Below, one piece after another: positions 27,907-62,678 of a DNA stretch of 64,000 bases (its first letter is position 1; each line of letters opens with the position of its first letter). The position numbers were made by a program, and so were the translations under genes. The DNA comes from Piromyces finnis finn (Eukaryota; Fungi; Neocallimastigomycota). The notes below the pieces were generated by a model. It did not search any database. It was not told the origin of the DNA and saw only the letters and a program-made list of their open reading frames with translations. The stretch covers positions 62,001 through 126,000 of the forward strand of contig MCFH01000041.1 in assembly GCA_002104945.1 (NCBI GenBank). Reading direction: 5' to 3'.

Positions 27907-28450
27907 TTTTATTAAAATAATTTTATTTTAACAGTTTTTTTACCGTTTATATCCTTATAATAACCTTTTTTACTACCACAAATACTTCAAATACTTAGAA
28001 TAATCTTAAAATAAAATGAACTATTAATATTTAATATCGAGATTTATATAACATAAAAACTTAAACATTAATAACTTTATTTTATAACACTTTTATACCA
28101 AATTCTTTTATTTAAATAATTTTAATAAAAAAACTTATTTAACAATTTTAAAAGACAAATAATTATACTTTTTACAATTTAGATTATTTCCTTAACTTTA
28201 ACAATAACTTAATTTATATTTAATAATCACATTTCTACCAAACTTTTTTTTAAACAACATCATACTTCCAATTATAATTTAAAATTTATTGCATTTCAAT
28301 CCATTATAAAGCATTATTAATTTTGTTTATAACAAAATGTTTATAATTATTAATAATATAAATTCAATACTCTTTTAACTAACACAAAAAAGTTATAATA
28401 CGATATAATTCATTTTAGTTGAAAGTGTAAATAGTTTATTCACAATTTAT

Positions 28451-54500: not shown

Positions 54501-56335
54501 TCAATGTGCTATGGGTAAACAAGCTATTGGTGCAGTAGCCTATAATCAATTTACAAGAACTGATACCTTATTGTATCTTAATGTTTATCCACAACAACCG
54601 ATGGTCAAAACAAAGACAATTGAATTAATTGGCTATAATAAATTACCAGCAGGTCAAAATGCTACTGTTGCTGTAATGAGTTATAGTGGTTATGATATTG
54701 AAGATGCTTTAATTGTTAATAAGGTAAAACTTTATATTATTAGTTTTTAAAATATATAAATATATCTGAATTAATTATACTAAATATAAATTATAATAAA
54801 ATAATTTGATTTTATTACTTATATTTATTTAACAGGCATCTTTAGATCGTGGTTTTGCTCGTGTACAAACTATGAGAAGATTCTCAGCTATGATTAAAAC
54901 ATATCCAAATGGAACTTATGATCGTGTATTTTTACCAAGAGATCCAGTTACTCATAATGTCGATCCAAAGTTTTCTGTATTAGAAGAAGATGGTATATGT
55001 GCGGTTGGTGAAAGAATTGATCCAGGAAAAGTACGTATTTTTTTTTTATTGGATAGATATAAATGAGAATGCAATAATTAATATATATTCTTTTTATAAT
55101 TTTTAAGTGCTACATATTTAAACAATCCCCCGTTGAAAATGGTCCAACAGCTGATGGAGTAATTTTATTTATTTATTTATTATTATTATTATATATATAT
55201 AAATTATTAATAACTAATTATATATATATTTATTTATTTACTTAAAATGAAAGACTCGTAATACTGTTGAATACACAAATACAGAACAAAACTTTAAATA
55301 TCCAGGTGTTTCATATGTTGATAGAGTAAGTAAAAAATATTGAAATAAATATTTTATCTTTATTTTTATTAATATATATGATAAACATTTTTAATTTTAT
55401 TTATTAGGTATTGATTACAACAAATGAAGAAGACCAAACCCTTGTAAAAGTATTGGTTAGACAAACTCGTCGTCCAGAATTAGGTGATAAATTCTCTTCA
55501 AGACATGGTCAAAAGGGTGTTTGTGGTTTAATTGTTAATCAAGAAGATATGCCATTTACTGATCTTGGTATTGTTCCAGATATTATTATGAATCCACATG
55601 GTAAATATTTTTTTCTCTCTATTTTTTTTTATGTTCAATATTAATGTTAATAATAAAATAAAAATAAATAAAATAAAAATGGATATATATATATTTACTA
55701 AAAATAAAAATATTTAATTTTATTATAATTTAAAAGGTTTTCCAAGTCGTATGACTGTTGGTAAGATGATTGAATTATTAGCTGGTAAAGCTGGTGTATT
55801 AAAGGGTGAATTACAATATGGTACAACATTTGGTGGTAGTAAGGTAGATGATATGTCAAAGATATTAATTGAAAATGGGTTCAATTATTCTGGTAAAGAT
55901 TATGTTACTAGTGGTATTACTGGAGAACCTTTAGAAGCTTATATCTTCTTTGGTCCAGTCTTCTATCAACGTTTGAAGCATATGGTATTAGATAAAATGC
56001 ATGCTAGATCTCGTGGTAAGCGTGCAGTATTAACTAGACAACCAACTGAAGGTCGTTCAAGGGATGGTGGTCTTCGTGTAGGTGAAATGGAACGTGATTG
56101 TTTAATTGGTCATGGTGCAAGTAATTTGTTAATGGAAAGATTAATGTTTAGTAGTGATGCATTCGAAATTGATGTATGTCAAGACTGTGGTTTAATTGGG
56201 TTCCAAGGTTATTGTCCATATTGTAAGAAGAGAAAGGGTGTTTCAAATATTCAAGTTCCATATGCTTGTAAGCTTTTATTCCAAGAACTAATGAGTATGA
56301 ATGTTGTTCCAAGATTAATTTTAGAAGATATCTAA
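51537..56335 (+). CDS. RPC2: RNA polymerase III second-largest subunit; multi-exon
   Basis: [135 protein letters not shown]. Confidence 0.95.
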
Positions 56336-57004: not shown

Positions 57005-57895
57005 TTAATATAATGCCATTAAAGCAAAACATGAATATAATAACAATATTGGATATGCCACAAGTATAATTTGATCCTTCATAGATAATGAGGTAATAAA
57101 CATTCTTGTTGCTGTAATTGTAGACCATACTAAGCATATACCACAACACATTTTTGCAACTGTGCCACTATTATATTTGAAAATTATATAAAAGTTCAAT
57201 AAAATAATAATTTTTATAAAAATTTCGAAGTTATATTATTACTATTATTACCTTGGATTTAAGAATGTAGAAATTGCTGATAATACCACTATTGGAAGAA
57301 GACAATAACCTAAAATACTGCCAGTATTTGATGGTTCTAAATGAGCTTCACTCATTAAATTAAGTATTAAATGAACTCCAATACTTCCTAATGATGCTAC
57401 ACCATAAATATAGCCGAAATTAACTTTTCCTCTCTTTTCAAGTCCATTTAAAAAATCAGAATTTATAAATCATATATTATTTTTATTAATTAAATTTAAA
57501 AATATAAAATATAAAATATAAAAATAAATATATAATTATATTTAATATTTGTAAGAATTACTAAATATTAAATTTATTTTATATAATACATACGAGAAGT
57601 AAAATAGAACCAAATATTAAACAAAAAATAAGTGGTCCAACAAGATCAGGGTTACCCATATTTTCATTATCATATTTCCTAAATGGATATAAAACTACAA
57701 GAGCCTTAAAAAGATAATATTTAATAAATTTAATCATTTTATGGAGGAGAAATGAATGATTATTATTTCATTTTACTCAATATTTACCTTCTTCTTAATA
57801 TCCGAAAAACTAATTTCTAATTCTATATTATTAAAAATTATATCATTGAAAATAATAATTATGGAAAAAAAATAATTAATGAATATTTATTGCTT

Positions 57896-57939
<44 letters not shown>

Positions 57940-58274
57940 AAATGTTTCATTTTTTAAATTTAAAGTTTTTAAAATAATTAATTACCTTCTAAAAGTGGTG
58001 GTTCATCATCGTATCCTCCAGTACCGAAAGCTGCTTTAATCGATGCAAAAGTTACTCTATCATTATATTCATATTGAGTATTCATGTTTCCAGTATAAAA
58101 ATTCTGTGGTGCTGGTGGTGTAAATCCGGTTGTTGTACCAGAACCATAAATTTGTTGATTGTCGTAAGTATTGGAAGAGTAGAATTGTAAATCATTATTA
58201 TTTTGCTCTGGTTGTTGTTGTTGATAATAATCCTGCTGATTACCAAACAAAACAGAATGTGCTTCGTTTTGCAT
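57005..58274 (-). CDS. YIP1: Yip1-family Golgi membrane protein (YIP1/YIPF5-like); 5 exons
   Basis: GTGGYDDEPPLLEELEISF, DLVGPLIFCL, GKVNFGYIYG, SILGYCLLP, WSTITATRMF, LVAYPILLLYSCFALM. Confidence 0.9.
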
Positions 58275-58579
58275 TTTATTATTTAATTAATTGTATTATT
58301 TGTTTATTTATTTGCTTATTATTTAATTATTTATATTATTTGTATTATTAATATTAGTTTAATAGAAATATATTTTTATTCACTTTTTTAATATTTTTTA
58401 TTTTTATTTTTAATAAAACATAAACCTAATCTTATTATATATATATTTAAATTATAAATTCTATTTCCCAAAATTATTTTTATTTGTTTTAATTTTAAAA
58501 GATATAAAGAAATATTTTGAAGAAATTAAATATTAATATGTAAAATTTATTCTCAATAATGATTATAAATGTTAAATTA

Positions 58580-58745
<166 letters not shown>

Positions 58746-59305
58746 ATTACCAAAAATAATTTTTTTAATTGTATTTTACATACGTTATAAATATATTGAC
58801 AATGTATTTTTTTTTTTTTTTAATTACAAAATAAGGAAAATAATAAATACAACATAAAAAAACTATTATTTAACTTAATATTTATCTTTTTTTATTTCTT
58901 AAATTTTATTTTTGATATATTTTTTTAGGTATATATAGTGTTATCATATTTTATAACTATTTGAAATAATTACTTATATAGAATAATATTAATATGATTA
59001 ATATGATTTATTAATACACAATACACAATTAATAGCTTTTTTATATAGTTTAATCATTAAAAAAAAAAAAAGGATTTCAGAATTTTCAAATTAAATAATT
59101 AAATATATATTGATATATTAATTATAATTTACTATTATTTAATATTAACTTTTTATTTTATTTTATTTTTTTTATTTTTCTACTTTATTTCAATACATAA
59201 TAATATATCGGAATTTTATATTCCATTTAACAATTATTGTTTGAAAATTTAATTTATTATTTATTCAAAACAAATATTATATTTTTGATAGAATAATAGT
59301 AGATA

Positions 59306-59987
59306 ATGTCAAACGAGCAACCAGAAGAGCATGTTGAAGAATTTAAGGAGCAAGATCGTTATCTTCCAATTGCAAATGTTGCTCGTATTATGAAAAGAGC
59401 ATTACCAGAAAATGCAAAAATCGCAAAGGATGCTAAAGAATGTGTTCAAGAATGTGTTTCGGAATTTATTTCATTCATTACAAGCGAATATCCTTTTAAT
59501 AAATTTTAAAATAAATGATTAAAAAAAAAGAAAAAAGAAAACTATTTAAATTGTTTATATAATCTTATTCCTTAATTTTTAATATATATAATGCTTTCTT
59601 GATTGTTATATTTTAATTTCTATTATTATTTCATTTTAATACAGCAAGTGATCGTTGCCAAAATGAAAAACGCAAAACAATTAATGGTGAAGATATTTTA
59701 TGGGCTATGCAATCTTTAGGTTTTGAAAATTATTGTGAAACATTAAAAGTTTATTTACATAAGTATCGTGAGGTATGTATAAATATTTATTAAATTATTA
59801 TTATTGTTATTATTTTTTAAAGAAAAGGGATATATTAATTAAAATTTCAATTTATTTTTTATAATGAAATAAAATAAACCAATTGAAATTATTAAAGGCA
59901 ACTAAGAATGAAAGATCTTCAGCAGGAAAAGATACTGGAATGGATGAAACTTTAGCAAATTTATATCAACAACAATATTATCAATAA
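59306..59987 (+). CDS. HAP3: CCAAT-binding factor subunit B (NF-YB/Hap3), 133 aa; exons 59306-59487, 59643-59772, 59898-59987
   Basis: [40 protein letters not shown]|[30 protein letters not shown]. The conserved core is restored only by an AT-AC first intron. Confidence 0.95.
59488..59642 (+). other. U12-type (minor spliceosome) AT-AC intron, 155 nt
   Basis: 5' end ATATCCTTTT matches the U12 consensus RTATCCTT; 3' end ..TTTTAATAC; candidate branch points TTCCTTAAT (59568-59576) and TTTCTTGAT (59595-59603); splicing gives GA|A GCA AGT GAT (E-A-S-D). Confidence 0.9.
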
Positions 59988-60417
59988 AATAGAAAAACAT
60001 ACTATTTTATATATGTATAATTGTTGGATATCAATATCTTTTATATCATTTTAATTTTTTAAAATAACTCATTAATATGCATTTTATTAAAAGTAATTTA
60101 ATTTAATTAAAGTAACTGAAATATGTTTACCATTTATAATAGACTTGTATAAATTTAAAAAATATTATTAAAATAAATAATTTCTTATAAAATATAATTT
60201 TTATTATTTCATTTTATTATAAAAATTTATGATTTTATTATCTATTACATTAAATTTTGATATTTATTTATTTACGAATGAAAAATGAAAATAGAATAAA
60301 AAAAAAAAAAAAAAATCAATGAATAAATAAATAAAAAAATAATAATAATAAAATTTAAATGTTAATAAAAATTATCAATTATTAAATTTGCTATTCTTAT
60401 AAAGCATATTTAATGGT

Positions 60418-62251
60418 TTAATTGTTATTCCAAAAGATATTTTTTGGGAAGTTTTTATCAAATGTTTTTTTTGACATATTAAGTCTAGTTTCTAATTGTG
60501 GCAAACATTCAATCTCTTCAGTTTTTTCGGGTATTATAGCTAATGCAGCTATACCCATATATGAATGTAATATATCTTTATAGTATATAATATAATTAGA
60601 AATATTATTATTATAAGTTATTAATTATGTAAAATTATCTTACCTGGAAAATCAATTTCAGGATATTTAGCAAAACCTCCATATATTGTTTGAGTACTAT
60701 ATAAAAATTTTTTATGAGCTTCGTGATCTAAAAAATGATAACCGCCTAAGATCTATTATTGAATTTATAAATTATTAAAAAATTAAAAATTATTAATATG
60801 TATTTAAAAATTATTTAATTACATCAATAGCAGCTCCAATCCAGAATGAATAACAAGTATCTGGTGGTTTATTCGCCCTTCCTTGAAAGCCATCAACTTG
60901 TCTTGATAAACACCACAATAATGTATCCTTTTTTGATTTTAGACCCTCGTCAATTTTATTCATGAGACTCAAGGCAGCAACAGCACAAAATGTTGGTCCA
61001 CCTATCATAATATTTTAAAAATCATTTAATTAAATTAATGTTTAAATATCATTCTATGTTTAAATAGTTATTAAGATAATTAATATTAAACACTAATTTT
61101 TTAATTCTATGTTTAAACCACAAATTATAAATTAGTATATTTATAATTTGTGGTTTATTTATTATTATTATTATTTTTTTAAATTAATACCATGTGATTC
61201 TAAACCAAAGCCTTGAGAAATACCAAAATCATATGTCTTTTATATATATATATATATTTTAGTAATAGAAAATCAATTCAGTATAACTTCTTTTTTTTTT
61301 AATTATACATATATTTATTTGCATACTTGGCTTTTTTTAATGAAATCAATTGCTTTATCGATGTTTATACCACTCCAATCATTTAAAATATATGAAATTA
61401 CTGAAGCACAATACAAAAATCTCATATCATATTCCATCCCAAAAATGACTGGAGAGAAACTATTTATTTTAATTTATTATTGTTTTATTATATTTAAAAA
61501 TAATTATACTTTATGAATTTATAATTCAAACATTTAACATATATACCTTCCATCTTTCTGCTGTAAATGCGATATTGATTCAATTATAGCTTTTTTATTA
61601 ACGCGAGATAAATCATCTCCAAGAATTATTAAACATATAAGTGCGGTATATGTCATAGCTAAATTTGATGCATCATATGGCTCATGAATTGTTTCTTTCT
61701 TTTATTATTATTATTATTTTTTGGCAATTATAAATACAATTAATAATTATGTTTACATTTAATAATGTATTTATATATTCATAATATTTACTGAATTAGG
61801 TTCAAATTTATGACCAAGAAATGGTGCCCCTCTATAACCACATTGACCAATATCTTATATATTAATATTATTAAAACTTTTGTTTTTAGAAACCGGAGAT
61901 TATATATATATATTTTAATAGATTATTTAATTACTTCCTATTTCTGGATCCGGGTGGATTTGTTGTGCGTATATCCAATCAATTGTTTTTTGTTTGATAT
62001 CTGGCGTTAAAACATCGTCTAAAGCTCCTAAAAGATCAAGTCCAGAGATACAGAAGAATAGAAAAGTCATTCTATAACATAATCATTTTTAGAGATGAAT
62101 GAATTTAATATATAATTTAATTATTTATGCATATATTTTAATTAAGGTATATTTACCTATTAGTATCTGAACTGGTATATTGATATGGTAGCATTTTAAA
62201 GCATCTTTCAAAATACTTTATATGCTTATGTTTTTCAAAAGTTTCAGACAT
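60418..62251 (-). CDS. PGGT1B: Geranylgeranyltransferase type-I beta subunit (Cdc43/PGGT1B); multi-exon
   Basis: [104 protein letters not shown]. Confidence 0.9.
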
Positions 62252-62678
62252 TTTTTAAAATTATTTAAATTTTACATTAATAATATATTTATTCTGTTTC
62301 TTAACTTTTATTATTTAATAATAATAATAGAAATAAAATTTTTATATTATTATAATAGTCTTTAAATACATTTACTTTAATAATTATAAATAAAATTAAA
62401 GTTTTATTTTATAAAGAAATAATTATCAAAAATTTAATTAAAAATTAATCCATTAAAAACAAAGTAAATAAATAAATGAATTAATAAAAGATTTTTATTA
62501 ATTTTTTTTAAAATTTTTTTTACCAAAAGTCGGAGATAGTACTGTATAATATAAACATAAACATTAAATTTTTTCACATAAACTCATTAGTTAAGTTTTT
62601 ATACATATATATATATAAAAGACATAACTATAATTAAGTGTAAATAAGTATAACATACCATAAAATAAAATTTAAAAA

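Follow-up and report, generated by a model that had tools for sequence, protein, structure and literature searches.

The NF-YB/HAP3 gene of the anaerobic gut fungus Piromyces finnis is interrupted within its histone fold by an intron that begins with AT and ends with AC. The locus raises the question of which spliceosome removes this intron, which branch site is used, and why the intron is present at all. The gene lies in a window of 64 kb, which is the whole stretch of DNA that was analysed. A gut-fungal host had been proposed for this DNA from the letters alone, and the proposal proves correct, since the 3682 nt compared, which surround the gene, match Piromyces finnis assembly GCA_002104945.1, contig MCFH01000041.1, without a difference. 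Our analysis indicates, with a probability of about 0.9, that the Glu61 codon of P. finnis NF-YB/HAP3 is interrupted in phase 2 by a U12-type AT-AC intron, at positions 59488-59642. The termini, the donor box, the branch box and the exact restoration of the reading frame all agree with this assignment, which was also that of the first-pass annotation.

The P. finnis NF-YB gene is composed of three exons that sum to 402 nt and encode a protein of 133 aa (sequence analysis of the window; Table 1). Intron 1 starts with ATATCCTTTTAAT and ends with TTTTAATAC, and the spliced product reads FITSEASDRC over the first junction. This product contains both the CBFD_NFYB_HMF histone fold and the NF-YB signature ..[RK]C..EKRKTI.., and is ~80-90% identical to annotated fungal NF-YB/HAP3 proteins. 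The translation of the AT-AC model is the same, without any difference, as the annotated Piromyces sp. E2 protein OUM70260.1. Likewise, the Pfam profile is continuous over the junction, with the split codon occupying profile position 43 and neither a gap nor an overlap between the two matched segments. Earlier statements about the donor, the acceptor, the exon sum and the FITSEASDRC join were all verified in the window.

Table 1. Features of the NF-YB locus of P. finnis (positions are those of the window)
Feature	Position	Strand	Description
NF-YB exon 1	59306..59487	+	ATG to second base of Glu61 codon; ends ..ACA AGC GA
Exon 1 profile match			PF00808 CBFD_NFYB_HMF positions 2-42, E 1.2e-16
Intron 1	59488..59642	+	155 nt, AT-AC, phase 2, U12-type
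Intron 1 5' splice site	59488..59496	+	ATATCCTTT; perfect U12-type consensus
Intron 1 branch-site motif	59568..59576	+	TTCCTTAAT; 67 nt from 3' splice site; presumed branch site
Second branch-like motif	59595..59603	+	TTTCTTGAT; probably non-functional
Intron 1 3' splice site	59640..59642	+	TAC, then exonic AG
NF-YB exon 2	59643..59772	+	begins A GCA AGT GAT CGT TGC
Exon 2 profile match			CBFD_NFYB_HMF positions 44-65, E 2.4e-5
Intron 2	59773..59897	+	ordinary GT-AG, GTATGT...AAAG, phase 0
NF-YB exon 3 and stop codon	59898..59987	+	translation matches proteins P0201 and P0121 exactly

The window is AT-rich (~19% GC) and the donor box ATATCCTT is matched 8 times within it, against 6.5 matches expected. 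Because this count is near expectation, the box alone carries no significance. The ATATCCTT donor of intron 1 sits at the sole base able to restore the NF-YB frame, and the TCCTTRAY motif appears in 0.4% of shuffles of the intron body (chance 0.004). A GT-AG or GC-AG intron at the NF-YB break was rejected, as none of the possible pairs preserves the conserved residues, and even the best of these alternatives remove 2-16 residues of the histone fold. Combining the AT donor with the overlapping CAG acceptor was also rejected. As had been stated in the first-pass annotation, translation of this alternative join runs into a stop, which is reached after two codons. Nine other [AG]TATCCTT sites are present in the window, and none of them lies, in a plausible gene setting, between an open coding exon and a downstream branch motif. 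The site at 27949 was considered as an intron start and discarded: it is intergenic, despite the presence of TTCCTTAAC 239 nt downstream.

Canonical U12-type AT-AC introns, as found in animals, plants and early-diverging fungi, follow the consensus /ATATCCTT ... TCCTTAAC ... YAC/. The P. finnis intron resembles them in having AT-AC ends and perfect donor and branch boxes, in not being phase 0, and in residing in an "information-processing" host gene. It differs from them in the 67 nt that separate its branch motif from the 3' splice site, a spacer rich in A/T. A few AT-AC introns are excised by the major (U2-type) spliceosome, and the same could be proposed for intron 1. In such U2-type introns the donor resembles GTRAGT but starts with A (ATAAGT), and the TCCTTAAC branch box is missing. 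These introns share their terminal dinucleotides with the P. finnis intron, which also resembles the 3' region of U2-type introns in its long branch-to-3' distance and in the T-rich tract before the 3' splice site. Moreover, no snRNA, minor or otherwise, and no other Rfam family was matched in the 64-kb window. However, the P. finnis intron has both U12 boxes, and its donor ATATCCTTT is unlike that of a U2-type AT-AC intron. ATATCCTT is invariant in the gut-fungal orthologs (Piromyces sp. E2, two Neocallimastix paralogs, Anaeromyces and a metagenomic species) while the remaining sequence of intron 1 diverges among them, and the TCCTTAAT motif, with its chance occurrence of 0.004, is conserved as well. 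The orthologous introns of Basidiobolus and Rhizophagus are textbook U12 introns. Finally, both minor introns and minor snRNAs have been reported for P. finnis itself by Larue and Roy 2023 (PMC10639083), and they have been published for Neocallimastix californiae as well. Removal of intron 1 by the major spliceosome is consequently very improbable, and we infer that the minor spliceosome is the machinery that excises it. The deduction of a working minor spliceosome in the first-pass annotation is therefore upheld for P. finnis by the published work, but it is not a new inference.

Under this U12-type assignment, U11 and then U6atac would recognize ATATCCTTT at the 5' end of intron 1, and U12 snRNA would pair with TTCCTTAAT. 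The cuts would fall before A59488 and after C59642, with GA being joined to A-GCA, and the joined exons would encode ..FITSEASDRC.. within the 133-aa histone-fold protein.

In a literature search that included some text supplements, no publications joining NFYB with minor introns were found. The NF-YB intron adds one conserved example to the published gut-fungal minor introns, and in this respect the main claim matters little. A metagenome scan with a conserved 23-mer of the U12 5' end identified two loci, of which one is a real U12 from a GC-rich organism. This locus (L021:707-854), on a JGI metagenome contig of high GC content, is a full-length U12 snRNA (RF00007, at 143 bits) and is unrelated to the gut fungus.

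Evidence for the position of the cuts comes from transcripts of Neocallimastix. The JGI transcript contigs L005 and L009 have 100% identity to the exons of the genomic loci L004 and L006-L008, and encode the Neocallimastix NF-YB proteins uninterrupted; the 5'UTR introns are also absent from them. Their junction, ..ACTAGCGA/AGCAAGTGAT.., is the one left when ATATCCTT...AATAC is excised, allowing for the customary ambiguity of 1 nt. Both introns are likewise missing from L002, another gut-fungal contig, whose junction is GAA GCT AGC GAT. Neocallimastix orthologs with the same distal layout of the branch motif are thus demonstrably spliced at AT-AC, and it is for this reason that the P. finnis intron is filed as U12-type despite its spacing. 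P. finnis RNA presumably uses the corresponding 59487/59643 junction. The P. finnis RNA runs contain 31-48% of the sampled words of 59200-60100, which is approximately the exonic share, and the only run shown to contain the 3' part of intron 1 is a DNA run, although both of these indications are weak.

The public gene model of P. finnis NF-YB differs from ours at precisely this junction. GenBank entry ORX45162.1 reads ..SESSDRC.., with Ser62 at the position of the conserved Ala, and is reproduced exactly by an intron at 59490-59644 (AT..AG) in which both ends are moved by 2 nt. Over the P. finnis junction such a shifted cut would read ..AGCGAATCAAGT.., whereas the AT-AC cut reads ..AGCGAAGCAAGT... 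If the public model were correct, NF-YB would genuinely carry this Ser, and it is in favor of that view that the Anaeromyces robustus model ORX87983.1 has the same residue (SESSDRC). These models are nevertheless difficult to reconcile with the Neocallimastix transcripts, which are identical to the genome and give GAA-GCA, encoding an Ala that only the AT-AC cut yields. In Piromyces sp. E2 and N. californiae the modelled protein has SEASDRC, with Ala present in both Neocallimastix models, and Ala is the usual residue at this site among the retrieved NF-YB proteins. A cut placed 2 nt within the ATATCC box also misfits U12 5' splice-site recognition, and AT-AG combinations have been described as disfavored (PMC3584512). 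The shifted intron would be a typical aligner artefact, in which a forced AG acceptor is paired with a donor that keeps the frame. We therefore give almost no credence to the Ser62 model. In ORX45162.1 and ORX87983.1 the 2-nt splice-site shift falsely turns an Ala of the histone fold into Ser, and the NF-YB records of both species, P. finnis and A. robustus, need correction in GenBank and UniProt. That gene predictors would mis-annotate this gene had been forecast, and this has come true for P. finnis NF-YB itself, while the models of the related species Piromyces sp. E2 and N. californiae are correct. The error in ORX45162.1 and ORX87983.1 is a new point.

Comparable irregularities are seen in other public NF-YB models. 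Those of Dentiscutata erythropus, Dichotomocladium elegans and the spider Oedothorax gibbosus enter the same U12 intron (..SEYPF..), and NF-YB of Pilobolus umbonatus shows ..SESSDRC.., as does the shifted P. finnis model. The models of this set (P0003, P0013, P0020, P0028/P0100 and P0029) probably represent the same class of annotation error.

The branch motif of the P. finnis intron is unusually distant from the 3' splice site. The optimum for the branch-to-3' site distance of U12 introns is 11-13 nt (PMC3584512), and the short spacing that is usual for the class is not found here: the distance to the 3' end of intron 1 is 67 nt for the second A of TTCCTTAAT and 40 nt for that of TTTCTTGAT. 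The greater than typical distance had been recognized in the first-pass annotation, which proposed both motifs as branch points. Of the two, TTCCTTAAT is conserved in Piromyces sp. E2, where it falls within the longest intronic island shared with P. finnis, but TTTCTTGAT is not conserved in that species. Five gut-fungal orthologs have a single strong branch motif, and its distance from the 3' site is 51-94 nt, compared with ~11-18 nt in other fungi. In addition to P. finnis, the five comprise Piromyces sp. E2 (TTCCTTAAT, 51 nt), Neocallimastix paralog A (ATCCTTAAT, about 55 nt), the metagenomic species L023 (GTCCTTAAT, about 60 nt) and Neocallimastix paralog B (TTCTTTAAC, 64-94 nt). From its conservation, the distal TTCCTTAAT is presumably the branch site actually used. 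In the proposed scheme, the branch motif and the 3' splice site would have been moved apart in anaerobic gut fungi by the insertion of A/T-rich and poly-T sequence.

The broader proposal, that the minor spliceosome of Neocallimastigomycota uses branch sites far from the 3' site, at 51-94 nt in the NF-YB intron, is a tentative one to which we attach slightly less than even odds. With expanded microsatellites, as in Anaeromyces, the distance possibly grows to hundreds of nt. The coupling of branch and 3' sites is tight in animals, plants and other fungi, at about 11-13 nt. If the A of the distal TCCTTAAT is the branch point, then U12 3' site choice would be mechanistically relaxed in Neocallimastigomycota, and standard classifiers, whose search for the branch box is confined to the vicinity of the 3' end, would under-count gut-fungal minor introns. 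The occurrence of the distal motif across five gut-fungal orthologs provides a testable case of relaxed spacing between U12 branch and 3' sites. The unusually distant NF-YB branch motif in gut fungi is a new point, and a literature search found no publication on distal U12 branch sites in anaerobic fungi. Two features that might accompany the long spacing were considered and rejected. The spacer downstream of the branch motif contains no AC or AG in four orthologs, but the same holds for 9-75% of shuffles of its composition, and an AC/AG exclusion zone is therefore not significant. A hairpin that would shorten the branch-to-3' distance has a fold of -3.8 kcal/mol, with z = +0.8.

Length variation is apparent in this part of the intron. 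In Neocallimastix paralog B (L006, L007 and L011-L016) the poly-T tract between TTCTTTAAC and the 3' site ranges from ~37 to >70 T among assemblies and metagenome contigs, and the branch-to-acceptor distance is polymorphic (64-94+ nt); the transcript contig L009 is still correctly spliced. The orthologous AT-AC intron of Anaeromyces robustus (L010:601-1880) is 757 nt long and contains ~50 tandem copies of the branch-box-like 8-mer TTCTTTAA, along with a stretch of poly-T and an array of (ATTATC)n. More than 250 nt separate the last box-like unit from the 3' site, and near the 3' site itself (..GATTTAATGACATTAC/AG) this intron has no strong branch box.

The comparison of intron positions among NF-YB orthologs, which had been suggested from the sequence, was informative as to the origin of the intron. 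In Rhizophagus irregularis (L017) and Basidiobolus ranarum (L020) the DNA contains a GA/ATATCCTT...AC/ intron in the same codon, so that these introns share with that of P. finnis the codon, the phase, the donor and the AC acceptor. The branch spacing is different, being ~18 nt in Rhizophagus (CTCCTTGAT) and ~11 nt in Basidiobolus (TTCCTTAAC) as against 51-94 nt or more in the gut fungi, and these introns are 72-128 nt in length whereas the P. finnis intron has 155 nt. The AATAC/AGC acceptor is kept in four gut-fungal orthologs. Since Rhizophagus and Basidiobolus carry an AT-AC intron at the same site, the NF-YB intron is old and inherited from the common ancestor of several fungal phyla.

Gene calls in which the intron is left unspliced translate RTATCC in this phase as ..SE-Y-P.., providing a read-through signature for its presence. 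Among 207 retrieved NF-YB fragments and proteins, ..SEYP.. is found in 44, from sources that include Dentiscutata, Dichotomocladium, Basidiobolus, Thamnocephalis, the spider Oedothorax and a Prorocentrum transcript. The ..SEYPF.. read-through of Oedothorax may point to an occurrence in animals. A GTAYG-like donor at the same site is represented by ..SEY[not P].. (19 of the 207), a G/GT donor 2 nt downstream by ..SEG.. (32 of the 207), and FITSE/ASD is contiguous in the case of 97. The shifted form is present in the chytrid Gaertneriomyces semiglobifer (L019:301-764), where a GT-AG intron, GAA G/GTATTT...TAG/CC, lies 2 nt downstream. U2-type GT-AG introns at this downstream position (GAA G/GT...AG/CN) also include those of Rhizopus microsporus and an ascomycete (P0032, P0085 and 30 others).

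These U2-type introns (Gaertneriomyces and the SEG and SEYV classes) break the same FITSE/ASD histone-fold junction as the P. finnis intron. They differ from it in their GT-AG ends, in having no ATATCC box, and in lying in phase 1 of the Ala codon 2 nt downstream or, where they are at the same site, in having a GTATGT-like donor. The exonic AG that follows the AC acceptor of the AT-AC form occupies the position of the U2-type acceptor, and U12-to-U2 conversion by a 2-nt shift is therefore suggested. The positional comparison thus suggests that the U2-type NF-YB introns at the same site or at +2 may be U12-to-U2 conversions. Conversion of a U12 intron to U2-type through a short splice-site shift has been described in Trichinella (PMC2846911). 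Overall, the old NF-YB U12 intron appears to have been retained in some lineages and converted or lost in others. At the FITSE/ASD site, fungi can be compared for the presence of a U12 intron, a U2 intron in the same place, a U2 intron displaced by 2 nt, or no intron.

It had also been suggested that NF-YB depends on this intron, possibly as a rate-limiting control point. Such a control point would gate NF-YB and hence CCAAT-dependent transcription. Minor introns can indeed splice slowly, and minor-spliceosome activity may be limiting (PMC3584512 and general literature). However, descent suffices to account for an intron that fungal phyla have inherited at one and the same site and that, as judged by read-through, is present there in a spider. 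Many lineages instead have U2-type introns, either in this place or 2 nt downstream, or intron-free models, and NF-YB is still conserved. Larue and Roy, moreover, argue for a largely neutral evolution of minor introns. The presence of the intron needs no regulatory role, because it can be explained by inheritance from the common ancestor of several fungal phyla; the control-point proposal is unsupported, and we consider it unlikely. The best explanation of the available comparisons is that the NF-YB U12 intron is an old inherited opisthokont feature and not a lineage-specific regulatory device.

The genes around NF-YB appear more conventional in structure, and those of their introns that were inspected appear to be ordinary GT-AG introns. 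A multi-intron gene for a prenyltransferase beta subunit is located downstream of NF-YB in convergent orientation (60418-62260, - strand; Pfam Prenyltrans on the public model). Upstream of NF-YB there is a Yip1-like gene on the opposite strand (57579-58274, - strand), and exons that by eye resemble the second-largest subunit of RNA polymerase are found at 54872-56335 (+ strand). A long intergenic simple repeat, which reads (FIYL)n on the - strand, is located upstream of NF-YB at 58577-58753.
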